IMG/VR virus record: IMGVR_UViG_3300046003_007892
Span: 124,001 to 188,000 of that record
Reading direction: 5' to 3' (one strand)
DNA: 64,000 bases
The notes under the pieces are model-generated. The model was not told the DNA's origin and ran no database searches. It saw only the letters and a program-made list of their open reading frames with translations. Of the stretch, positions 3,547-53,548 are shown in pieces. The translations under genes and the position numbers were made by a program. Within the stretch, counting starts at the first letter, position 1, and each line of letters begins with the position of its first letter.

Positions 3547-4752
3547 CTAGGACGGGTCATTATCCCGTGGTTGAAAGTTTTCAGCCGTAAGCCACCCAGT
3601 ATCGACCATTTCTTGCTCAGATTTGTCGCTTTCGTGAACGGCGGCGACAATTTCTTCCAGGAGGTGAGGATTGTTTTCCAGGATGGTAAGCACCTGTTCC
3701 TTGGCCGATACTGAACTTTCTTCGGCAACTGTGGACTGAATTTCCGGCTCAGCTTCGGGTGTGTCCGCTACCGTATCGTCTTGACTCGCCAGAGCTTCTT
3801 TGGCAGCGATTTCAAAAATCGATGGTTCCTGGAGGAATGCCGATAGGCGTTCGTTCGGTGCCGGGACGAGTGGGATGACATCCTCGTAGGAAACCGGTCG
3901 TTCATCTTCCGGGATGAAGTCGTCCTCTGGGGAATCTTCTTCGATGACATCGGTCTCGCTGAGGTCTTCCTCGACTGGTTCCTGAACGGCTTCCACGACC
4001 ACCGGCTTCGGTTGGCGAGAACGTGACCATTCTCCAAGCGTGATCGTGCCTGAGATCATCAGGACGATAGCCAGAGGGTCGAAGGCGAACATCAGTGTTC
4101 CGATGACGGCTTGAACGGCTGCCGTGGGGTCTTTGAAGCCCATGGTGGTCAGGGGGCCCAGCTTGGCGGTGGCGGCGTTGGCCTGACTCCGCAAAGGTGC
4201 CATCTCGACGTTCTTGGCGGTGATCTGCGCGTTCAGGGCGGCGATCTCTCTGGAGATGCGATCACGGTCCCGGCGTTGTTGGCTCATGAACGTCGTTGCG
4301 CCCCTGGCCGAGCCGCCCGCAAGATAGGTGTCCACGGTCTTGTTGATGTTGGCTTGCTGGCGTTCCAGTTCCGTCCGTTGGGCGAGCAACTGGTCAAGTT
4401 GAGCCTGATGACTTTCAACCTGCATCGTGATCTCGGCCGCAGGCGCCTTCTGGTCGAGATGGGCCTTCATCAGATAGCCGTAGATGCCCAAGCTCGTGAT
4501 CAGCATCAGGGCGATGACCGCTGCGCAGAGGTAGAAGCGGTGGAACTTGCTGACGAGGGGGTTCTTCCAGTTGGAATGGACCCAACCCGCAGCGACGAGC
4601 TTGCTGACTTCGAGGACGACGCCCATGATGGCGACCGGCAAGAATGCAGCCGAGAACAAAGCAGCCAGTCCGACCACGCTGAAATAAGCCGCAACAGCGG
4701 AGATCGCCACGGCACAAAACAGGGTCAAGGACCCGACGAGAAGTTTTTGCAA
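3547..4752 (-). CDS. Membrane protein with coiled coil and acidic tail
   Basis: N-terminal hydrophobic helices, Q/E-rich heptads, further TM segment, D/E-rich C-terminus; start uncertain. Confidence 0.75.
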   Translation of the reverse strand: MQKLLVGSLTLFCAVAISAVAAYFSVVGLAALFSAAFLPVAIMGVVLEVSKLVAAGWVHSNWKNPLVSKFHRFYLCAAVIALMLITSLGIYGYLMKAHLDQKAPAAEITMQVESHQAQLDQLLAQRTELERQQANINKTVDTYLAGGSARGATTFMSQQRRDRDRISREIAALNAQITAKNVEMAPLRSQANAATAKLGPLTTMGFKDPTAAVQAVIGTLMFAFDPLAIVLMISGTITLGEWSRSRQPKPVVVEAVQEPVEEDLSETDVIEEDSPEDDFIPEDERPVSYEDVIPLVPAPNERLSAFLQEPSIFEIAAKEALASQDDTVADTPEAEPEIQSTVAEESSVSAKEQVLTILENNPHLLEEIVAAVHESDKSEQEMVDTGWLTAENFQPRDNDPS

Positions 4753-14199: not shown

Positions 14200-14525
14200 A
14201 GGATGACTTCTATGACGACAATCTAGATCGCACCTACAACGAATCGGACCTGGAGATACACGCTCTCCTGTTCGATGATGATGATGACTACGAGTGGGAA
14301 GACAGGCCCGCCATAGCCACTATCCGACAGCAGTATCCGGGCTGGTACTTGATGAAGATCATCAACTACTCGGCTCCCAAGCTCGCTGAAATCGAGAAGT
14401 GGCTCGAAGACAATACGAGGGGGCGTTGGGCCCGCATCGGTTGGTCTTCAGGCTGTGCCTACACGGTCGGTCTCGCTTTCGAGAACGACTACGACACCCT
14501 CCTCTACAAGCTGCAATGGCAGTGA
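14190..14525 (+). CDS. Hypothetical protein (small-family member)
   Basis: IEKWLEDNTRGRW...AFENDYDTLLYKLQW; start 14190 or 14196. Confidence 0.75.
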   Translation: MEMKDDFYDDNLDRTYNESDLEIHALLFDDDDDYEWEDRPAIATIRQQYPGWYLMKIINYSAPKLAEIEKWLEDNTRGRWARIGWSSGCAYTVGLAFENDYDTLLYKLQWQ

Positions 14526-14551
14526 AACTCATCTCATCAAAGGAAAACACC

Positions 14552-15124
14552 ATGTCTGCTCTGAACCTCAAGCCCACTTTCACCGACCGCGAATCCTACA
14601 AGGCCTGGATTGCCTCGTGGCGGGCCGCCTACCGCGAAATGTCCCAGGACATCCGCACGCGGAAATACAAGCTCAAGGACGCCCAGCGGGCCGAAGAGAG
14701 CAACGCCGGAACCCTTCAGGCCCAGCTTCGTCAGCACCGCCACATGGCGGCCAAGATGATGATGCTCCGTGAGGAGGCCACGCAGCGTCGTGACCGAATC
14801 CTGGGCATGCACAAAGCCCTGAAGGAACAGTTCGACTCGTTCCCGCTCGACCTCGGCACCTGCAAGAACGTCGATTTCCACTTCAACAAGGGTCACATCG
14901 AATTCCCCTTCCTGCCCATGTGGGCTCTGAAGGTGAAGGGCCAGACCTTCTACGTCCACAACATCGAGTCCGAGGCTCCGTGGAATACCCACGAGCGTTC
15001 CTCGGGTTCGACCAAGGGCGTGCTCCGCTTCAAGAAATGCAACATCGTGATCGATCAGTCCGGCACTGCTCGCATCACGGAGGCCGTCGATTTTTTCGTT
15101 GACGAAATGGCGGAGGCAGCATAG
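14552..15124 (+). CDS. Hypothetical protein
   Basis: AAAGGA SD; FHFNK...PMWALKVKGQTFYV...TKG; ends TAG GAG TAA. Confidence 0.8.
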   Translation: MSALNLKPTFTDRESYKAWIASWRAAYREMSQDIRTRKYKLKDAQRAEESNAGTLQAQLRQHRHMAAKMMMLREEATQRRDRILGMHKALKEQFDSFPLDLGTCKNVDFHFNKGHIEFPFLPMWALKVKGQTFYVHNIESEAPWNTHERSSGSTKGVLRFKKCNIVIDQSGTARITEAVDFFVDEMAEAA

Positions 15125-15418: not shown

Positions 15419-15487
15419 GCGCCCGAAAGGCCTATCCTGGGCTTCTAACCCCCAAGGGTGAGGTTTCGATTACCTCCGGGCGCACCA
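15419..15487 (+). tRNA. D-armless tRNA-like element; anticodon CUA by register (UCU alternative)
   Basis: Acceptor GCGCCCG/CGGGCGC+A+CCA; T arm GAGGT-TTCGATT-ACCTC; anticodon stem TGGG/CCCA; only 12 nt replace the D arm. Confidence 0.7.
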
Positions 15488-15494
15488 TTTTGAG

Positions 15495-15530
15495 GAAAGG
15501 CGGGGACCAGCGGGTCTCCGCCTTTCTTTC
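15495..15530 (+). terminator. Strong hairpin, probable terminator
   Basis: GAAAGGCGGGGACC-agcg-GGTCTCCGCCTTTC then TTTC. Confidence 0.75.
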
Positions 15531-15654
15531 ACAGGCTTCGGTGGCTTGGGAACCTGGGACCCAAGCGACTGTTGAGCCGCCATTGTCTTCGGAGGTGGCG
15601 GTGTGGGGGCGGTATGGATTTGGCGGCGCCGCTGGCCTGCCGTCCCCAACCAGC

Positions 15655-15730
15655 GCGTCGTTAGCTCAGATGGTAGAGCATCGGCTTCTAACACCGAGGG
15701 TCACGGGTTCGAGTCCCGTCCGACGCGCCA
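15655..15730 (+). tRNA. tRNA with CUA anticodon (amber suppressor candidate)
   Basis: 76 nt; D stem GCTC/GAGC; anticodon stem TCGG/CCGA with C31-A39 mismatch puts CTA at 34-36 (15688-15690); T arm ACGGG/CCCGT; G73, encoded CCA. Confidence 0.85.
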
Positions 15731-17055: not shown

Positions 17056-17146
17056 GCGAGGGTGCCAGAGCATTCAAATGGGCCGGACTGCAAATCCGGT
17101 GGAGCCAATAACTCCTACGAAGGTGCGAATCCTTCCCCTCGCTCCA
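17056..17146 (+). tRNA. tRNA-Cys(GCA) with long variable arm (class II / Tyr-like scaffold)
   Basis: Acceptor GCGAGGG/CCCTCGC, U73, CCA; CCGGA-CTGCAAA-TCCGG; V-arm GGAG-ccaataa-CTCC; T arm GAAGG-TGCGAAT-CCTTC. Confidence 0.88.
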
Positions 17147-17164: not shown

Positions 17165-17641
17165 GTGAATGTCGTAGACGAACACGAATACGGCGACGAC
17201 GGCTACCTTCTCGAAATTCGCGACTGGTGGGGCGGAGAAAGCATCGGTGCCTTCGGTCATATCCCCATCAAGGAAGTCGCCACGCAGGCTCGGCGCGACG
17301 GTAGGTCGTTCGGCTCCCAGGTTCGCGACATCCGTGCATCGGAAGGCTACTACCTGAAATCCATCAACTACGGCGCCTACCATGAACTTCGAGTTGAGTT
17401 CGAAGGTCGGGCGGGTCGCCGGACCATAACCTTGGCTGAAATCTCGGACGCCGTCTACCGCACGTTTTTGGAGTTCAGCGTTTCGTTCGAGAAACCTTGG
17501 ACGTCGATGGTGGTCAGAGCCAGGAACAAACTCCCGGAAGGCTTCATCGTTGGTTTTCAGAGCGACGCCGACCTGACCAAATACATCATGATGCTGGACG
17601 CCGCGATTGCCAGCCTGAACAAACCCTTTATAGTCAAGTAG
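17165..17641 (+). CDS. Hypothetical protein (small-family motif at C-terminus)
   Basis: GGAG SD, GTG start; [16 protein letters not shown]. Confidence 0.7.
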
Positions 17642-17649
17642 GCCCCAAG

Positions 17650-19596
17650 ATGAGCAAGTATCGCACCCACACCTGTGGCAAAGTAGACAAATGGACCGCT
17701 GGCGTCCGGGTCAAGCTCTCCGGCTGGGTCCATTCGCGTCGCGATCACGGTGGCCTGTGCTTCATCGATCTCCGGGACAACTACGGCATCGTCCAACTCG
17801 TCGCCCACCCCGAGAGCCCCGCTTTCGCTATCCTCAACGATGTCCGCCTCGAAAGCGTGATCTGCGTCGAGGGACCGGTGATTATGCGGGCCAAGGAACA
17901 CGTCAACGCCAATCTGGCTTCCGGCGAGGTCGAGGTTCAGGTCATGGCCTGCGAAGTTCTCAGCGAAGCCGAACCCCTTCCGGTGCCGGTCGTGCCGCCG
18001 CGCAACAAGGAAGGTGAGGAAGTCCTCTACCCGGAAGAGCTTCGCCTCAAGCACCGCTATCTCGACCTCCGCCGTGACGCCCTGCACCGCAACATTCTCC
18101 TCCGCAGCGACGTCATCGCTCATATTCGCGAGGGCATGATCTATCAGGGATTCCGGGAGTTTCAGACCCCCATCCTGACCGCCTCTTCGCCCGAGGGGGC
18201 GCGGGACTTCCTGGTGCCCTCCAGGGTCCATCCGGGCCAGTATTACGCCCTCCCGCAGGCCCCGCAGCAGTTCAAGCAACTCCTCATGGTCGCGGGCTTC
18301 GACCGCTATTTCCAGATCGCTCCCTGTTTCCGCGACGAGTCCGCGCGTGCCGACCGCAGCCCTGGTGAGTTCTACCAACTCGACATCGAGATGTCGTTCG
18401 TCGAGCAGGACGAAGTCTTCGCTGTCGCCGAAAAGATTCTGTCGAGCACCTTCGAAAAGTTCGCCCCCAAAGGCATGACCGTCGATCAGGCGCCCTACGT
18501 CCGTATTCCCTACCGGGAATCCATTCAGCGTTTCGGCTCCGACAAGCCCGATCTCCGAAACCCTCTGGAGTTCCGTGACGTCACCGAAACTTTCCGGGAC
18601 GGTGACTTCCCGTTCTTCGCCGACATGATCGCCAAGGACCCCGAGGCCCGCGTCTGGGGCATCGTGGCTTACGACAAGCAGTATCTGCAAGGCCTGCACG
18701 ACCCTCTGCTCCCCGAAGGCTATCCACTGGTCACGTCGGGTTTCTGCAAGAAAATGGACCAGTGGGCCAAAGACGAGGGACGGGGTCTGGCTTATATCCG
18801 CTACGCCGACGACCCCTATGTCGATGGCGTGACCCCCTATGCCCATCGCCCGCATGGGCCGGTGGCGAACAAGATCGGCGAAGACGCGGCTGGCAAGATC
18901 GGCCAGGACTTCAACATCCTCGACGCCAACGAGTGTGCCATCTTCTTCGTCGCGGGGCGGCCGGATGAGATGTATAAGTTCGCCGGACTGGTGCGCACCA
19001 AGCTGGGAGAAGAACTCGACCTGATCGAGAAGAATGCCTTCAGGTTCTGTTGGGTGGTTGACTTTCCCATGTTCGAACTCAACGACGAAGGCCGGGTGGA
19101 TTTCTCCCACAACCCCTTCTCGATGCCACAGGGCGAGATGGACGCTCTGGAGAACCAGAACCCGCTCGACATTCTCGCCTATCAATACGACATCGTCTGC
19201 AACGGCATCGAACTCTGCTCGGGCGGCATTCGGAACCACAAGCCGGAGATCATGCTCAAGGCTTTCGAGATCGCCGGGTATGGGCCCGAGATTGTCGAGC
19301 AGCAGTTCGGCGGTATGCTCAATGCTTTCCGCTACGGGGCTCCCCCGCATGGCGGCATGGCGCCCGGTATCGACCGCATCGTCATGCTCCTGGCTGGTGA
19401 GGAGAGCATCCGCGACGTCATCGCCTTCCCGCTCAACCAGCAGGGCCAGGATTTGATGATGAACGCGCCCGCGCCGCCGACCGAGAAACAGGTTCGGGAA
19501 CTCGGCCTGAAGGTTCGTCTCAAGGATGGGCCGCACCTCATCGACGGCAAGACCGCAGACGTCAAGAACGGCGTCATCACGGTGGTGCAGGGGTAG
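17650..19596 (+). CDS. aspS: Aspartyl-tRNA synthetase, probably non-discriminating
   Basis: YRTHTCG, RRDHGG (His at the ND position), [35 protein letters not shown]. Confidence 0.98.
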
Positions 19597-31261: not shown

Positions 31262-31530
31262 TGCTAACCGCGAGTGATCGTGCCCTCCAACTCGCCTTGC
31301 TGGTTCTCGTCGTCCCATACGCGATTTTGTGTTGGGTGGTGGCTCCATGCTTCCTGCTTTTTGCCGCGATAATAACGCTCGGCGCCGCCTTGCTCGACCG
31401 GTGCGGCTTCGAAGAGTTCTCCGGGATGTTCATCGTCACGCTGTTTGTCGTCACATCGCCGTTCCGCTTCGTGTTCGACCGAATCTACGCAGCCGTGTTG
31501 GGTCGCGAACACGAGTGGAAGTTTCACTAA
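31261..31530 (+). CDS. Hypothetical membrane protein
   Basis: Two or three hydrophobic helices; TGATG coupling. Confidence 0.65.
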   Translation: MLTASDRALQLALLVLVVPYAILCWVVAPCFLLFAAIITLGAALLDRCGFEEFSGMFIVTLFVVTSPFRFVFDRIYAAVLGREHEWKFH

Positions 31531-31533
31531 ATA
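31527..31533 (+). promoter_or_regulatory. Late promoter, leaderless configuration
   Basis: CTAAATA-TGGA-ATG; the TAA is the upstream stop. Confidence 0.7.
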
Positions 31534-31537
31534 TGGA

Positions 31538-32122
31538 ATGCGTCTGACCGAACTCTCTATCCCGCACGACCGCGAAGAACTCTCGCTGGAACTCATGGTC
31601 GCAGGCTACAGTCCGTTGGGTTCCGGCGACTTCGCCGATGTCTACCACAAGCCCGGCGCCGCCTACGTCCTAAAGGTTTTCGAGCCTCGCGACGAAGCCT
31701 ATCGGGCATTCCTGACCCTGGCCCGCTCCCATCAGGACAACCCGCATTTCCCGAAGATCATCGGGAAGCTCGTAAATATCAAAAACAAATGGTTCGCTGT
31801 TCGGCTCGAAAAGCTGGAGCGGTATCGCTACGACAGCACTCTGATCTACCGCTACATTCGCTGGCGGGATGAGCGAGGCAAGCATGACCCGCAGGGTATG
31901 TTCGCGATGGAACTCGAAGACGCGTTCGAGTTCATGGAGGAATACCCGAAACTCCAAGAAGCATGCGATCTCATCATCGACAATCTCCTCACGCAGGGCG
32001 GCCAATCCCTGGCCGGTCATGTGCCGGATTTCCGTCAGGACATCCGCAACGACAACATCATGATGCGGGGAAATACCATCGTGATCGTTGACCCTATCGT
32101 GCCCAACAAAGAGATGAAGTAG
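31538..32122 (+). CDS. Protein kinase-like fold enzyme, putative head cargo
   Basis: LGSGDFADVY, VLKV, DIRNDNIM (DxxxxN), IVIVDP; MRLTE N-terminus. Confidence 0.8.
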   Translation: MRLTELSIPHDREELSLELMVAGYSPLGSGDFADVYHKPGAAYVLKVFEPRDEAYRAFLTLARSHQDNPHFPKIIGKLVNIKNKWFAVRLEKLERYRYDSTLIYRYIRWRDERGKHDPQGMFAMELEDAFEFMEEYPKLQEACDLIIDNLLTQGGQSLAGHVPDFRQDIRNDNIMMRGNTIVIVDPIVPNKEMK

Positions 32123-40603: not shown

Positions 40604-41299
40604 TTAAGCAGTGTAGGTAATATTTGTCAAGTTAATAGGTTTCTCATTGAGGAGATCGTATCTCTCGATCACGCTCTGAACAAACAGGGGAGAACCCTTG
40701 AGGACGCGAAGTTCGTATTCGTTCTCGCCGGTTTCCCAATCCATCCCGGCCATGATGGTGTGGTGCCAGTCAATGTGGGATGGGTCTACGACGGCGTGGA
40801 TGACCACGTTGACGCCTTCGGACTTGAGATCGCTCCAGACGGGTTCGAAATCCCAAGCATGGGGGTCGTAGGTCCAGTAGATGCCCAAGCTGGTCTGGCC
40901 GATGCGCTGGACGGTAGCCGCCCAGTTGGTCGGGACCTTCATGATGCGGTGGATGGAATACAGGCCGGAATGTTTCTCAATAGCGGTCAGGCGTGCGATG
41001 ACCTCGTCGTAGCGATTGTCGCACCACCACATCGCAAACGCACGGAACTCCGGCGTATCCTGGACGTCGATATCTTCCATGTCCGCGAATTGATCGGGGA
41101 ACGGATAGTTGAAATCACCCTCTCGCCAGTATTCAATCATGCGTGCGCCATTGTCGGAACCCTGGAACTTGCCCGGATAGGCCGCATGCGCTTGATCATC
41201 CCAGAAGAGACCCTGAACGAGGCTGTCCGTCATCTTGGCGCAGATGGCAGCCTTGTCCGTGGCGCCGACGCTTTCCGCGAGCGTGATCAAATGTCTCAT
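40604..41299 (-). CDS. ART-like putative head protein
   Basis: MRHLITLAE; IHRIM, SLGIYWT, ENEYEL. Confidence 0.65.
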   Translation of the reverse strand: MRHLITLAESVGATDKAAICAKMTDSLVQGLFWDDQAHAAYPGKFQGSDNGARMIEYWREGDFNYPFPDQFADMEDIDVQDTPEFRAFAMWWCDNRYDEVIARLTAIEKHSGLYSIHRIMKVPTNWAATVQRIGQTSLGIYWTYDPHAWDFEPVWSDLKSEGVNVVIHAVVDPSHIDWHHTIMAGMDWETGENEYELRVLKGSPLFVQSVIERYDLLNEKPINLTNITYTA

Positions 41300-47899: not shown

Positions 47900-48808
47900 A
47901 TGTATTCGAAAATCAGAGACCTCCATAACGTAGCCGACGCGGTGTCTGATCGCACGGCACCGGACTCCGTCGTCAACCAAGAGATCGATTCGGCTTGCCG
48001 GGACGTGCCCGGATATCGGTCTCTCGACTATGCGGGTTCCTCGGAAAATGCTCTGGTTCTTGTTTCCCTCCTGGCCGGGACCCGCGTTCGTGTCCTGATC
48101 GATTCGGACCCAGACCGCAGCCCCGAATGGCGATGCCTCATCCGTCTTTCAGGAGAGGATGGGACCTCGGCCCAAGGGTTGACCCATCACAGCATGGCGC
48201 GCGCTATTCTGCGTGCTCTGTTCGCCCACATAGCGAACCAGTGCAGTCATACCTGGACACCAGCCATGGCCAGCTATGGCATGTATTGTGGCACCTGTGG
48301 GGTGTTCTCGACGGCGGTGTTCGACGGCGATGACCCGGTCGAGAAGGTCGTGAACCAAAAATCCATCATCGACGTCATTGATACCCCCGAGGCCCCCAAG
48401 GGAAGTCAACGATTTCGGGGTGAACTCGGTGAGCTTTATCATTGGGCTTCTCAGCACATCGACCGCACACCCAAGCTCCCGTGCGCCGTCACCGATATGA
48501 CCCCGAGGGAGTTCAAGATTTTCGAGGTCACCGCCTACGCGTGCGGGTTCGGCCTGTTCATCCGCGATCTTCTTCACGCCCGCCTTGTGCGCGAGCAGTC
48601 TGAATCCGTGACCGACGCTCTCAATGCGGCGGCAGAGGCTATCGGGACCTGGGTGTGCACCTACGCCTCTGACATGTGCTCAGAGGAAGACGTTGTCGAA
48701 GCCCAGAATCGCATCGCCGAAGGCGGCGGCACGCTCGCCTATACGGCCGAGGTGGGGCGCCGCATCCAGAACGCCATTGATGACATCAAAGGGCGGAAGG
48801 ATGTCTGA
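47900..48808 (+). CDS. Hypothetical protein
   Basis: 302-aa ORF. Confidence 0.65.
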   Translation: MYSKIRDLHNVADAVSDRTAPDSVVNQEIDSACRDVPGYRSLDYAGSSENALVLVSLLAGTRVRVLIDSDPDRSPEWRCLIRLSGEDGTSAQGLTHHSMARAILRALFAHIANQCSHTWTPAMASYGMYCGTCGVFSTAVFDGDDPVEKVVNQKSIIDVIDTPEAPKGSQRFRGELGELYHWASQHIDRTPKLPCAVTDMTPREFKIFEVTAYACGFGLFIRDLLHARLVREQSESVTDALNAAAEAIGTWVCTYASDMCSEEDVVEAQNRIAEGGGTLAYTAEVGRRIQNAIDDIKGRKDV

Positions 48809-49562
48809 CGCCGAACTCCTCCTTGACCCCAAACACAGAGGCGAAGTCTCGCGGGTGCTCCGCAGTGCCTTGGAGATCAAGGACCGTGACCGCCACATCA
48901 TGGCGGTCTACCAGAAAGCCTTGGAGGCTATCGAGCACCATGGCACCAACACACAGTCGGCCTTCGTTGGTCACGTCCGTGGCGTCGTCCGCTACGCCTT
49001 GGGCGAAGTCCAGCGTCTCAAGAAAGAAAACACCACCGCCGACCATGAGATCGCCGTCAATCCCAAGATCGCCGCCATCGTCGAAGAGTGCTGGCGGTAT
49101 TGGGAACAGGTCAAGGGGAACTGCGGCGACGACATCAACATCGAAAACCAGGAGTTCAACGTCGGGCTCATCTCGTCTTGGGTTCGGGCCACGCATTCTC
49201 TGTCGAAGGCTCCCGGCGAATACATGATCTACGAGAAAGACCTGGACGCTGACTTGATCTTCGACGAAGCCGCTGTCGCCTATCTCCTCGCCCAGCAAGG
49301 GACCACGACATTCAAGACCGATGCGGCCACTTACGTGGACATGTCGGGAATCACGACAGCCATGACCGAGATGGTCAAAATCCTTCTGTCGATCTCCCGC
49401 GTCCGCATCATTCTCATGAACCGTACCATGAAGGAGTTCGCCCGCGAGGCCGAGCACACCGAGCACAAACTCCGGCAGGAGAACATGCTCCTCAGGGCAG
49501 AGCGGGACCAACTCAAGAAGCGGCTCGACAAATATGAGCCGGACATTAAGTCAACGATGTAG
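48801..49562 (+). CDS. Hypothetical coiled-coil protein
   Basis: GGAAGG SD; C-terminal heptads. Confidence 0.7.
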   Translation: MSDAELLLDPKHRGEVSRVLRSALEIKDRDRHIMAVYQKALEAIEHHGTNTQSAFVGHVRGVVRYALGEVQRLKKENTTADHEIAVNPKIAAIVEECWRYWEQVKGNCGDDINIENQEFNVGLISSWVRATHSLSKAPGEYMIYEKDLDADLIFDEAAVAYLLAQQGTTTFKTDAATYVDMSGITTAMTEMVKILLSISRVRIILMNRTMKEFAREAEHTEHKLRQENMLLRAERDQLKKRLDKYEPDIKSTM

Positions 49563-49640: not shown

Positions 49641-49844
49641 ATGATCGATTGTCTGCATCGTCCCGCGCCCTTCCACCGCATCCTCGTGGACGGCGTCATA
49701 GGCGTCATCCACAAGATCACCCATGGCCCAAAAAACACTAGACTTATCGTAGTGGTTGTGGGTAAAACAGAGCTTACAATTCCCTTCGCGGCCCTTGCTT
49801 GGGACGCGACGAATGCGCTCTGGAGACCTTTGTGCACGATCTGA
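49641..49844 (+). CDS. Possible small hypothetical protein
   Basis: Follows TTGACG-N17-TACCAT; overlaps the serS start. Confidence 0.35.
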   Translation: MIDCLHRPAPFHRILVDGVIGVIHKITHGPKNTRLIVVVVGKTELTIPFAALAWDATNALWRPLCTI

Positions 49845-51151
49845 AAGCAATCACGTCTGACCCCGAAGCATTCATCACCCGGTCGTTGGGTCGAGTGGAT
49901 GCCCAAAGGGTCAAGCAGATTGCCGAACTTCATAGTGGCGCCAAGACTCATCTTCGCATCGTCGAAGAGGCCGCAGCAAACATAAAGCATCTGAGCCGTC
50001 AGATTGGCCCTCTGATGCGAGACCCCGTCGCCAACGCAGAGCAGATCGCGGAACTCAAGTCCCAGGTCGCCGGGTTCAAGGACGCCGAGGTGCGCTCGGC
50101 CGCCCATCACGAAAAGCTCGAAGAAGCGGCACAGGCCGCTGCTCTGGCACTCCCCAACCTGCCCGCGCCAGACGTCCCATTCGGCGTTGGTGAGGAAGAC
50201 AACGTCCAGACCGCAATCTGGGGCGATCTACCCGTGATCGCCAACCCGCTCGATCACGTCGCCATCGGCGAGCGTCTCGGGATGGATTTCGAACAGACGG
50301 TCAAGATGTCGGGCTCGCGCTATGTCACCCTGCGGGGCTCTCTGGCCCGACTGGAACGCGTGCTCGGGCAGTTCATGCTAGACACCCACGTCGCCAACGG
50401 TTGGGAAGAGGTCACGCCACCCCACATCGTCAAGCCCGACGCCATGTTGGGCACGGGTCAGCTTCCCAAGTTTGGCCACGACATGTTCCATACCGGAGAG
50501 ACTGATCTCTGGACCGAGGACACCCGTTTCCTTATCCCGACCGCCGAGGTCTCCCTGACCAATCTGGTCCGCGAAACCCTGATGGACGCGGAACCCCAGC
50601 ACCGCATGGTTGCCCTGACGCCCTGCTACCGCCGCGAAGCTGGTTCGTCGGGTCGTGACACCAAGGGGATGATTCGCCTCCACCAGTTCAACAAGGTCGA
50701 GTTGGTTTCGGTCGTCGCCGCCGAGCATTCGGAAGCCGAACATATCCACATGCTGGAAGCCGCCGAAGGCATCCTGCGTCTGCTCGGCCTGCCGTTCCGC
50801 CGCATTCTCCTGTGCAGCGGTGACATGGGCTTCTCGGCTCGCAAGACGTTCGATCTCGAAGTTTGGGTCCCGAGCCAGGACACCTATCGGGAGATTTCGT
50901 CGATTTCGAACTGCGGTGACTTCCAAGCTCGCCGCATGGATGCTCGCTGCCGTCGCGGGAGCCGGTCGGACCCGCACCGCAAGGGAACTGACTTCGTCCA
51001 TACCCTCAACGGGTCTGGCGTCGCTGTTGGCCGCGCCCTCGTGGCCATTCTGGAAAACTATCAGGAGCCGGACGGCAACGTCCGCATCCCTGGCGTCCTG
51101 CAAGATCGTCTCGGTGGTGCCGAACTCCTCACCCCGGAAGGTTTCAAATGA
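49832..51151 (+). CDS. serS: Seryl-tRNA synthetase
   Basis: GTG-HDLKAI start with GGAG SD; LIPTAEV, CYRREAGS.GRDT.GMIR.HQF.KVE, EISSISNC.DFQARR, HTLNGSG.AVGR. Confidence 0.98.
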   Translation: MHDLKAITSDPEAFITRSLGRVDAQRVKQIAELHSGAKTHLRIVEEAAANIKHLSRQIGPLMRDPVANAEQIAELKSQVAGFKDAEVRSAAHHEKLEEAAQAAALALPNLPAPDVPFGVGEEDNVQTAIWGDLPVIANPLDHVAIGERLGMDFEQTVKMSGSRYVTLRGSLARLERVLGQFMLDTHVANGWEEVTPPHIVKPDAMLGTGQLPKFGHDMFHTGETDLWTEDTRFLIPTAEVSLTNLVRETLMDAEPQHRMVALTPCYRREAGSSGRDTKGMIRLHQFNKVELVSVVAAEHSEAEHIHMLEAAEGILRLLGLPFRRILLCSGDMGFSARKTFDLEVWVPSQDTYREISSISNCGDFQARRMDARCRRGSRSDPHRKGTDFVHTLNGSGVAVGRALVAILENYQEPDGNVRIPGVLQDRLGGAELLTPEGFK

Positions 51152-51751: not shown

Positions 51752-53548
51752 ATGGATTTCCTGCCCTCTGCCGCTCTTCGCTCCTGGCCGCATCGCCAAG
51801 CCATCGACGTTCTGCGTCACGTCGTAAAGACGCGCCTGCCGAGTGCTGCTCTGAAGGACGCTATGGCCCTGCTGTCGCAGGGTCGGGTCGAGGAACTCAT
51901 CACTGCGTTCCCGGCACTGTCCGGGCGTCAGGTCACCTTCCAGACCGGCTACGGCCCTTCGGGTGCCCCGCACATCGGCACCTTCGCTGAAGTCGTGCGG
52001 ACCTCGTGGGTCCAGCACGCTTTCCGGCACCTGACTGGAGACCGCATCAAGACTGCCCTCTACGTCGTCAGCGATGACTTCGATGGTTTCCGCAAGGTTC
52101 CCGATGGTCTCCCGGCGTGGATGGAAGAGGATTTCGGAAAGCCCCTGACGAGCGTTCGGGACCCCGATGACATCTATGAGAGCTTCGGCGCCGCGAACAA
52201 CGCCAAGCTCCGTGCGTTCCTGGCCAACCTCGGCATCGAACATTTCTTCGTCTCGGCGACGCGGGCGTATGACTCCGGCGTTTTCAACGACGAACTCCTC
52301 AACGTCTTCGATCATCACGACGCCATCCTGGACATCATTCTCCCGACGCTTGGCGAAGAGCGGCGCGCGACTTACTGCGCCTTCATGCCCCTCTCGCAGG
52401 AGGGGCGTCTGCTCCAGACCGGAACCCGTCTATCGCAAAACCATCGCGGCTTGCTCCTCTACGATGACCGGTTCGGCTGCCAGACCGGCAACGTGGTCAC
52501 GGATGGCAACGCCAAGCTTCAATGGAAGGTCGATTGGGCCATGCGTTGGGCTGCGCTCGGCACCGACTACGAAATGTCGGGAAAGGACTTGATCGAGTCG
52601 GTCAAGATCGGCAACCAGATCGTGCGCGTTCTGGGCAGCCAACCGCCCGTGCAGATGACCTACGAGATGTTCCTCGACGAGAATGGCGAGAAGATCAGCA
52701 AGTCGCGGGGCAACGGCCTCTCGGTTGAGCAATGGCTCCGCTATGGCTCGCGCGAGGGTCTGTCCTACTTCATGTTCGGCAACCCCACGGCGGCGAAGAA
52801 GCTCCACGTTGGCGTCATCCCACGCGCCGAGGACGACTATCTCGAAGACCTGGAAGCAGTCACGCCGGATTCGCCGTCGTGGCATATCCACCGAGCCGCC
52901 CCGCCCGCGCCGCTCACCACCGAAACCTCCTACGCGATGTTGGTCAACATGGCGTCGGTTTCGCGCGCCCCGGACCCCGGCATCCTCCTCCAGTATCTGA
53001 GCCAGAATCGTCCCATCGCCGAGGAAGAGATCGCCCGCGTCCATGCCCTGGCGCAGACGGTGGTCAACTACTGTGCTGGTGAGGTCTATCCGCACATGAA
53101 GCCCCGCGTGGCGACCAAGATGGAGAAGGTTGCCCTCTACGAATTCGCCTATGAACTCGAACAGATGGCCGATGGCCTCACGGCTGAGGAATACCAGACG
53201 GTCGTCTACGAGGTAGGCAAGACGCGGGGCTATGCGGACGACCTCCGTGCATGGTTCCGGGTCATCTATGAGACCGTCTTCGGTTCCGAAGAGGGCCCGC
53301 GCATCGGAGCGTTCATCTGTGCCATCGGCCGCCTGAACGCCATCTCGCTTTTCAACGGCGTGCCGATGGCTCGCGACCCCTTCATTGGTCGCAACCCCAC
53401 CGAGGTGCGCGCGTGGGAGATCGCCCGCGAGGCGCACGGCCCAGATATCCCGAGCCCGCACGAAGGCATGCCGCCCTCGGTGTGGTGCGCATTCGTGGCT
53501 GCCGCCGAGAAGGAACTCGGGCTGAGCAAGGAAATCGGAAATGCTTGA
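51752..53548 (+). CDS. lysS: Class I lysyl-tRNA synthetase with C-terminal extension
   Basis: TGYGPSGAPHIGT, SDDFDGFRKVP, KLQWKVDWAMRW, GKDL, KISKSRGNG, GPRIGAF. Confidence 0.97.
   Translation: MDFLPSAALRSWPHRQAIDVLRHVVKTRLPSAALKDAMALLSQGRVEELITAFPALSGRQVTFQTGYGPSGAPHIGTFAEVVRTSWVQHAFRHLTGDRIKTALYVVSDDFDGFRKVPDGLPAWMEEDFGKPLTSVRDPDDIYESFGAANNAKLRAFLANLGIEHFFVSATRAYDSGVFNDELLNVFDHHDAILDIILPTLGEERRATYCAFMPLSQEGRLLQTGTRLSQNHRGLLLYDDRFGCQTGNVVTDGNAKLQWKVDWAMRWAALGTDYEMSGKDLIESVKIGNQIVRVLGSQPPVQMTYEMFLDENGEKISKSRGNGLSVEQWLRYGSREGLSYFMFGNPTAAKKLHVGVIPRAEDDYLEDLEAVTPDSPSWHIHRAAPPAPLTTETSYAMLVNMASVSRAPDPGILLQYLSQNRPIAEEEIARVHALAQTVVNYCAGEVYPHMKPRVATKMEKVALYEFAYELEQMADGLTAEEYQTVVYEVGKTRGYADDLRAWFRVIYETVFGSEEGPRIGAFICAIGRLNAISLFNGVPMARDPFIGRNPTEVRAWEIAREAHGPDIPSPHEGMPPSVWCAFVAAAEKELGLSKEIGNA

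Follow-up and report, generated by a model that had tools for sequence, protein, structure and literature searches.

What is a tRNA that can pair with UAG doing in a virus whose own genes regularly end in TAG? The question is raised by a tRNA gene with a CUA anticodon at 15655-15730 (+ strand) of the window, by which we mean the whole 64,000-nt stretch of DNA analysed here (bases 124001-188000 of a 240,363-bp IMG/VR contig). Suppressor tRNAs in phages are usually explained as tools of recoding, or as the first step towards it once a stop codon is already rare. The contig is linear-ended, with a CheckV completeness of 45%, a GC content of 58% and 24 tRNA genes, and near-identical DNA is present in many lake-water metagenomes. 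In topoisomerase II it shares about 50% identity with Sinorhizobium phage Phosso (469 kb) and Agrobacterium phage Atu_ph07 (490 kb), and the source is a lake-water megaphage distantly related to both; a megablast search with the 5-kb neighbourhood of the tRNA against the GenBank phages returned no match. The window also encodes three aminoacyl-tRNA synthetases: an aspartyl-tRNA synthetase (aspS, 17497-19596, + strand, the longest ORF being given; Pfam PF00152 and PF01336), a seryl-tRNA synthetase (49799-51151, + strand; PF00587 in the genome search, Pfam Seryl_tRNA_N, NCBIfam serS with 419 bits) and a class I lysyl-tRNA synthetase (51752-53548, + strand; Pfam PF01921, NCBIfam NF001968 lysine--tRNA ligase with 561 bits).

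The structural evidence that 15655-15730 encodes a complete tRNA is consistent across methods. ARAGORN called two tRNA genes in the window, this one as cta (+) and another at 17056-17146 (+) as gca, and Rfam RF00005 matched 15655-15727 over model positions 1-71 of 71 with 57.7 bits (E 5e-11; the gathering score is 29 bits). The gene is 76 nt long, carries an encoded CCA and is drawn by ARAGORN as a canonical class I cloverleaf, which we read directly as GCGUCGU/UA/GCUC-AGAUGGUA-GAGC/A/UCGGC-UUCUAAC-ACCGA/GGGUC/ACGGG-UUCGAGU-CCCGU/CCGACGC/G/CCA. Both ARAGORN and the Rfam alignment place the cta at position 34 of a 7-nt loop, so that positions 34-36 are C34, U35 and A36; with U20, U33, A37, C38, G73 and a variable loop of 5 nt, every nucleotide assignment of the preliminary description (CUA, U20, C38, G73, a short variable arm) was confirmed. 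Two mismatches that it did not mention, C31.A39 and U7.C66, were also found. The nucleotides on which the tertiary fold of tRNAs is established to depend are complete (U8, A14, G18G19, U33, the purine A37, T54-Psi55-C56 and A58), and direct reading additionally gives the G15-C48 and A26.G44 positions and the T-loop UUCGAGU. ARAGORN puts the label "Pyl" on any cta anticodon. The body of tRNA-Pyl has a short variable loop, a small D-loop lacking G18G19 and a 6-bp anticodon stem; a tRNA-Pyl identity was rejected here, since the body is canonical: G18G19 and a T-Psi-C loop are present and the variable loop has 5 nt. A consensus scan of the gene's vicinity turned up no sigma-70-like promoter.

It is in the anticodon arm that this tRNA is peculiar. 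Efficient suppressors have the arm CU-CUA-AA and, according to the "extended anticodon" work of Yarus, they reportedly combine A37 and A38 with a paired 31-39. The present arm has the loop UUCUAAC, with U32 and C38, closed by C.A at 31.39 (a position that is left open by RNAfold), and so departs from this context at C38 and C31.A39. Charged with some amino acid, the tRNA would decode UAG in the infected cell in competition with release factor 1 (RF1), resulting in partial readthrough at UAG codons that may belong to the phage or to the host. From what is generally known of anticodon-arm effects, U32, C38 and the unpaired C31.A39 would be expected to make this suppression weak, and probably it is. 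The reading that we favour, to which we give slightly better than even chances, is therefore that of an intact tRNA whose CUA pairs with UAG in a phage of standard code, giving weak and partial UAG readthrough against RF1, and conserved as a trait within a clade.

The gene does not stand alone. At 15419-15487 (+ strand), 167 nt upstream, lies a second CUA tRNA-like element of 69 nt, which ARAGORN called as tRNA(cta) at a relaxed threshold only (-ps80) and which had no Rfam match at E<=1. Its 7-bp acceptor stem is perfect (GCGCCCG/CGGGCGC) and is followed by A73 and CCA; its T-arm is canonical (GAGGU-UUCGAUU-ACCUC), whereas the D-arm is reduced and rudimentary. The minimum-energy fold (z -3.6) keeps the acceptor and T arms and loses the anticodon arm. 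The element has in common with the CUA tRNA the 10-mer GGCUUCUAAC, which forms the anticodon-loop string, and its position 31 is also unpaired (C.C). It may be a decayed A73-type partner of the CUA tRNA, or else play some other role as a tRNA-like element. Between the two, at 15492-15529 (+ strand), a 17-bp hairpin (-30 kcal/mol, z -4.7) is followed by the U-rich CUUUCUUUC; it looks like a terminator, although its T-run was too short for the consensus terminator scan to call it. The 114-nt leader that abuts the 5' side of the CUA tRNA (15541-15654, + strand) gives three GC-rich hairpins on folding (-59 kcal/mol, z -2.7) and matches no Rfam family. Across four lake metagenomes neither the CUA tRNA nor the tRNA-like element has any variant, but the strains, with 19 clustered differences in 3.4 kb, are so nearly identical that this is weak evidence of selection.

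If 31.39 is unpaired, a different geometry can be drawn, with a 4-bp stem and a 9-nt loop, CUUCUAACA, from which AGA might be read through UCU, or a four- or five-base codon might be read. The body does resemble tRNA-Arg(UCU): the phage tRNA that matches it best over the full length is a tRNA-Arg(UCU) of an Acinetobacter phage (82% in BLAST, 64/76 positions when globally aligned), which shares the D-arm, the variable loop, G73 and the string CUUCUAA, and the preliminary description of "Arg(UCU) shifted by one base" stands, since this heptamer lies one position 5' of its place in tRNA-Arg(UCU). Besides the heptamer, such a geometry has in its favour the open 31.39 in RNAfold and the fact that the upstream element is read as tct in the mitochondrial mode of ARAGORN. 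The CUA tRNA differs from the Acinetobacter tRNA, however, in its loop register, which is shifted by one base and makes 34-36 CUA, and in having U20 for A20. C35 is an Arg identity element, and a tRNA-Arg(UCU) identity was discarded because U20 and U35 are present and the UCU register leaves no anticodon stem. Moreover, the phage already has a separate, normal tRNA-Arg(UCU) with A20, which is the strongest Arg determinant in E. coli (PMC9976931). Three unrelated phage suppressors (L011, L012 and L022) combine an identical UUCUAAC loop with an A31.C39 mismatch; CUA is thus found repeatedly in this arrangement. Taken together, we find the reading of any codon other than UAG highly improbable.

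On the status of TAG in this phage the result is plain: the code is standard and TAG is a real stop in the sequenced part of the genome (about 45%). Using a simple, purpose-built codon-model gene caller, 324 genes were called on the contig, of which 151 end in TGA, 97 in TAA and 76 in TAG (about 23%). All the TAG-ended ORFs cited in the preliminary description were recovered in the window (14399-15124, aspS at 17497-19596, 31445-32122 and 48624-49562). Code 11 does better than TAG-as-sense both in coding density (0.82 against 0.795) and in total score. TAG stops are evenly distributed, along the contig as well as over gene sizes, with no TAG-depleted block, and the extensions after TAG are neither longer nor more coding-like than those after TAA or TGA. 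In the subset of genes with comparable homologues, the end falls within 10 residues of the homologue end for 16/26 TAG-ended, 32/39 TAA-ended and 32/47 TGA-ended genes, which are similar shares, and the homologues of those 16 usually end in TAA or TGA. Every candidate "split gene" suggested by ORF geometry was rejected: the ORFs are neighbouring genes, and either the TAG is directly followed by a start codon or a hairpin lies between them.

The same conclusion comes from comparison with four IMG/VR relatives, which were found through their AspRS (51-63% identical to that of the phage) and fetched in full: G001 (517 kb), G002 (608 kb) and G003 (578 kb), each of which is rated complete, together with G004 (415 kb). 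In a tblastn scan with TAG translated as X, which required that the query frame score best of the six and that conservation extend to both sides, no in-frame TAG in a true reading frame of the contig was conserved with any of the four (0 sites); without the best-of-six filter, the scan is swamped by wrong-frame and antisense alignments, such frames being open in GC-rich DNA. The claim that no long gene is broken by an in-frame TAG thus holds for the window and, with no conserved split, for the whole 240-kb contig, and with it the claim that this is not recoding: code 11 scores better, no in-frame TAG is conserved, and TAG ends coincide with homologue ends. Since the code is standard and TAG ends about 23% of the genes, the tRNA serves no recoded gene set there.

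Recoding proper could then be sought only in the remaining part of the genome (about 55%), for example in late or lysis genes. The contig is indeed 45% complete with linear ends, and in recoded phages the in-frame stops can be limited to late modules (bioRxiv 10.1101/2021.08.26.457843). The complete relatives are informative here, since G001, G002 and G003 carry CUA tRNAs while G001 and G002 fit the standard code better; in G003, a gene-by-gene scan for TAG recoding gave two hits only, one at a gene junction and one in an antisense frame. The latter candidate, at 535768, reads as an antisense-frame artefact and was rejected. In addition, TAG makes up 23% of the stops on the contig without a depleted block, and high GC together with frequent TAG is the opposite of the published path to recoding, in which TAG stops are lost in low-GC phages and a suppressor is gained afterwards (bioRxiv 10.1101/2021.08.26.457843); this route does not fit a high-GC, TAG-rich clade. 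We therefore regard true TAG recoding outside the contig as very unlikely.

A scan of the contig for TAG-split genes, as the preliminary description had suggested for the full genome, found none in this 45% of it, nor was any readthrough target or conserved extension after TAG found on the contig. Back-up stops after TAG are not enriched in the phage, in G003 or in G004, and therefore there is no genomic footprint of active suppression. A search for RNA-seq runs listed none. Judged from the sequence, "regulated partial readthrough", the wording of the preliminary description, is plausible.

Carriage of CUA tRNAs is, on the other hand, a clade-wide trait. One such tRNA is present in G001, two in tandem in G002 (4091-4256, one of them with a long variable arm), two in tandem in G003 and one, with a long arm, in G004; all four genomes fit the standard code better than TAG-as-sense, with TAG at 11-14% of their stops. 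The cultured Sinorhizobium phage Phosso has two CUA tRNAs, annotated as "tRNA-OTHER" and "tRNA-Pyl(cta)", the former ("tRNA-OTHER / Undet") at 171983-172058, between the CysRS and SerRS genes. What is new here is that the four IMG/VR relatives, three of them complete, and Phosso all carry one or two CUA tRNAs under a standard code, one or two per phage being the rule in these high-GC freshwater and soil megaphages. A pattern match in Atu_ph07 was rejected: the hit is no CUA tRNA, and none was found there by pattern search. Among G002, G003 and Phosso, the short CUA tRNAs are alike, with a CU-CUA-AA loop, and occur as a G73 type and an A73 type. The lake CUA tRNA (G73) finds its best match among the 259 tRNAs of five phages at only 58/76 positions and, from these sequences, would be no obvious orthologue of the relatives' suppressors, though the trait is conserved. 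Synteny is not conserved either, since no CUA tRNA stands next to aspS in the AspRS-based relatives L004-L010.

As a side observation, ARAGORN reports four-base anticodons (ggaa, ccta) for tRNAs next to CUA tRNAs, in G002 (1944-2020) and in an unrelated IMG/VR phage, L017 (10090-10167); these could be frameshift-type tRNAs or miscalls.

The conservation of CUA tRNAs across the clade argues that the tRNA is kept by selection, which bears directly on the possibility that it is a drifting tRNA duplicate with a chance CUA anticodon and little or no function. Drift would account for the mismatches U7.C66 and C31.A39 and the non-optimal loop, and would sit well with the lack of a close orthologue, the clearly degenerate adjacent copy and the missing footprint of suppression. 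Nearest-neighbour typing against phage tRNAs, and against all 259 tRNAs of the five genomes, gave no clear parent of the body (the closest are Arg(UCU), Lys and Asp, at about 76-84% identity), and no copy of this body with a free anticodon arm was found in IMG/VR. Against drift, CUA tRNAs are present in all five IMG/VR megaphages examined and in Phosso, the tertiary nucleotides of the lake tRNA are all intact, and its 57.7 bits in Rfam fall within the range of the relatives' tRNAs (about 56-78 bits). This makes a functionless duplicate quite unlikely in our estimation.

A further possibility is that the CUA tRNA and its tRNA-like neighbour do not decode at all, but act as decoys or antidotes against an anticodon-loop nuclease or toxin, or as ligands that regulate the neighbouring synthetase; the decoy idea arises because the loop contains the tRNA-Arg(UCU) heptamer CUUCUAA. 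In its favour, the two elements, 167 nt apart, have different bodies but a common GGCUUCUAAC, both being mismatched at 31.39. The phage also has many redundant and odd tRNAs, four of them with Lys anticodons, and CUA tRNAs adjoin synthetase genes both here and in Phosso. The relatives speak against it, as their CUA tRNAs have ordinary CU-CUA-AA loops on 5-bp stems, so that the only feature common to all is the CUA anticodon itself, which points to decoding. We consider a non-decoding role unlikely and retain partial UAG readthrough as the better account.

Which enzyme would charge the tRNA is a separate matter. The preliminary description had put forward the phage AspRS, taken to be non-discriminating, on account of G73, U35 and C38, and the class I LysRS, which reads U35. 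The phage AspRS matches the NCBIfam aspartate--tRNA ligase with 740 bits (residues 53-675 cover profile positions 2-588 of 590) and is named there only as a bacterial-type aspartate--tRNA ligase. The identity set of E. coli tRNA-Asp comprises G34, U35, C36, C38, G73, G10 and G2-C71; of these the CUA tRNA has U35, C38, G73 and G10, while C34, A36 and C2-G71 replace G34, C36 and G2-C71. Both tRNA-Asp genes of the phage carry A38, so C38 is no hallmark of its Asp tRNAs. For bacterial AspRS, G34, U35 and C36 are the strongest determinants, with G73 also major (PMC9976931), and with C34 and A36 in place of G34 and C36 the proposal of this enzyme is weak. Class I LysRS is not supported: the enzyme of B. 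burgdorferi, the sole class I enzyme studied, recognises U35, strongly U36, and an essential G2.U71 pair (PMC9976931), whereas the CUA tRNA matches at U35 alone and has A36 and C2-G71. Known identity rules would thus count against both candidates.

Other synthetases can be considered on the same basis. SerRS requires a long variable arm, which the lake CUA tRNA does not have; the long-arm suppressors of G002 and G004 could be used by SerRS. Amber suppressors of E. coli built on other bodies tend to be charged by GlnRS or class II LysRS. Misacylation by these two enzymes is the subject of one source (PMC1483225). If a phage synthetase does charge the tRNA, the pair would be of interest for genetic-code engineering.

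A second component that bears on termination lies outside the window. A gene at genome 93104-93784 (- strand) matches the C-terminal two thirds of RF1; the encoded protein lacks domain 1, retains the GGQ motif and has the tripeptide PPT at the place of PxT, which we take to be the RF1 codon-recognition motif. Direct reading and Pfam reveal an in-frame TGA at genome 93683-93685, presumably at the position of a conserved RF1 tryptophan. The orthologues of G001, G003 and G004, at only 48-52% protein identity, all have this in-frame TGA as well. It is the only conserved in-frame stop that the comparative scan found in real coding frames, and the scan flagged it in G003 and G004. ARAGORN found no UCA tRNA in the phage or in the four relatives. 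From the sequence, programmed UGA readthrough would appear to produce an RF1-like factor expected to act at UAG and UAA. No report of a conserved in-frame TGA in such an RF1-like gene was found in the literature searched.

This conserved UGA makes deliberate control of termination, CUA tRNAs included, more credible. Extending this line of thought, the phages might carry a UAG-termination module that leaves the code unchanged, composed of one or two suppressors (often of the G73 and A73 types) and a UGA-readthrough RF1-like factor without domain 1; the peculiar arm of the lake tRNA and its neighbour could then make them private substrates of a phage synthetase, which would be a natural orthogonal pair. 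We offer this as a speculation, and an unlikely one as it stands. In G002 the suppressors are present and the RF1-like gene is absent, so the two are not strictly linked.

Suppressor tRNAs in jumbo phages of standard code are already known, and were published without explanation. The Ralstonia jumbo phage RsoM2USA has a CUA suppressor despite abundant UAG in its genome (PMC8504454), and for phage G, also a standard-code jumbo phage, the literature reports a UUA suppressor whose role is left unexplained. Like the lake phage, RsoM2USA, phage G and Phosso are large, encode many tRNAs and translation genes of their own, and use their stops normally; the lake tRNA differs from theirs in its arm (U32, C38, C31.A39) and in the degenerate second copy adjacent to it, and its body has no close similarity to the type found in Phosso and G003. 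A CUA tRNA is also present in TAG-recoded phages (code 15: crAss-like, Lak and others), in many of them with the same U32-U33-CUA-A37 loop, but there many genes contain in-frame TAG, the GC is low, TAG stops are few and an RF2 is sometimes encoded, whereas the lake phage has no in-frame TAG, a GC of 58%, TAG at 23% of its stops and an RF1-like protein as its sole release-factor homologue. The classical amber suppressors supE, supD and supF resemble what is proposed here in having an elongator body, a CUA anticodon, competition with RF1 and partial readthrough; they differ in being one anticodon mutation away from an identifiable parent, while for the lake tRNA no parent can be named.

High-GC megaphages of an entire clade, including a cultured one, retain suppressors while TAG is common among their stops, which is a misfit to the usual explanation of phage suppressors. 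It points to a different use of readthrough, which might be to tune termination during infection, to extend some proteins or to disturb the host. Phosso, which grows on Sinorhizobium meliloti, makes the question accessible in the laboratory.

Several minor observations concern the surroundings of the locus and the tRNA set. The 19 single-base differences among the lake populations cluster at 17240-17569, 1.5 kb from the CUA tRNA, a stretch of 330 bases that precedes the annotated aspS ORF and includes its beginning, while the 3 kb flanking it, all tRNAs included, has no variants; the true start of aspS is probably downstream of this variable stretch. The two tRNA-Asp(GUC) genes, at genome 26938-27089 (- strand), have the anticodon loops CUGUCGA and UUGUCUA, that is, G37/A38 and U37/A38 in place of the usual purine 37 and C38. 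The second tRNA called in the window (17056-17146, + strand, just upstream of aspS; 50 bits in Rfam, and supported by its fold) is also unusual, with 91 nt, U73 and a type II body combined with the Cys anticodon GCA. A long variable arm is normally confined to Ser, Leu and Tyr tRNAs, and this is one of several tRNAs of the phage in which it occurs with an unexpected anticodon: Cys (GCA, U73) at 17056-17146, Lys (UUU and CUU, U73) and Asn (GUU), the others being located at genome 83023-83116 and 83131-83217 (- strand) and 40741-40829 (- strand). In all four relatives there are similar tRNAs with a long arm, whose anticodons are those of Lys, Asn, Cys, Gln or Thr, and every one of the phages with these odd long-arm tRNAs (the contig and the four relatives) encodes a SerRS.
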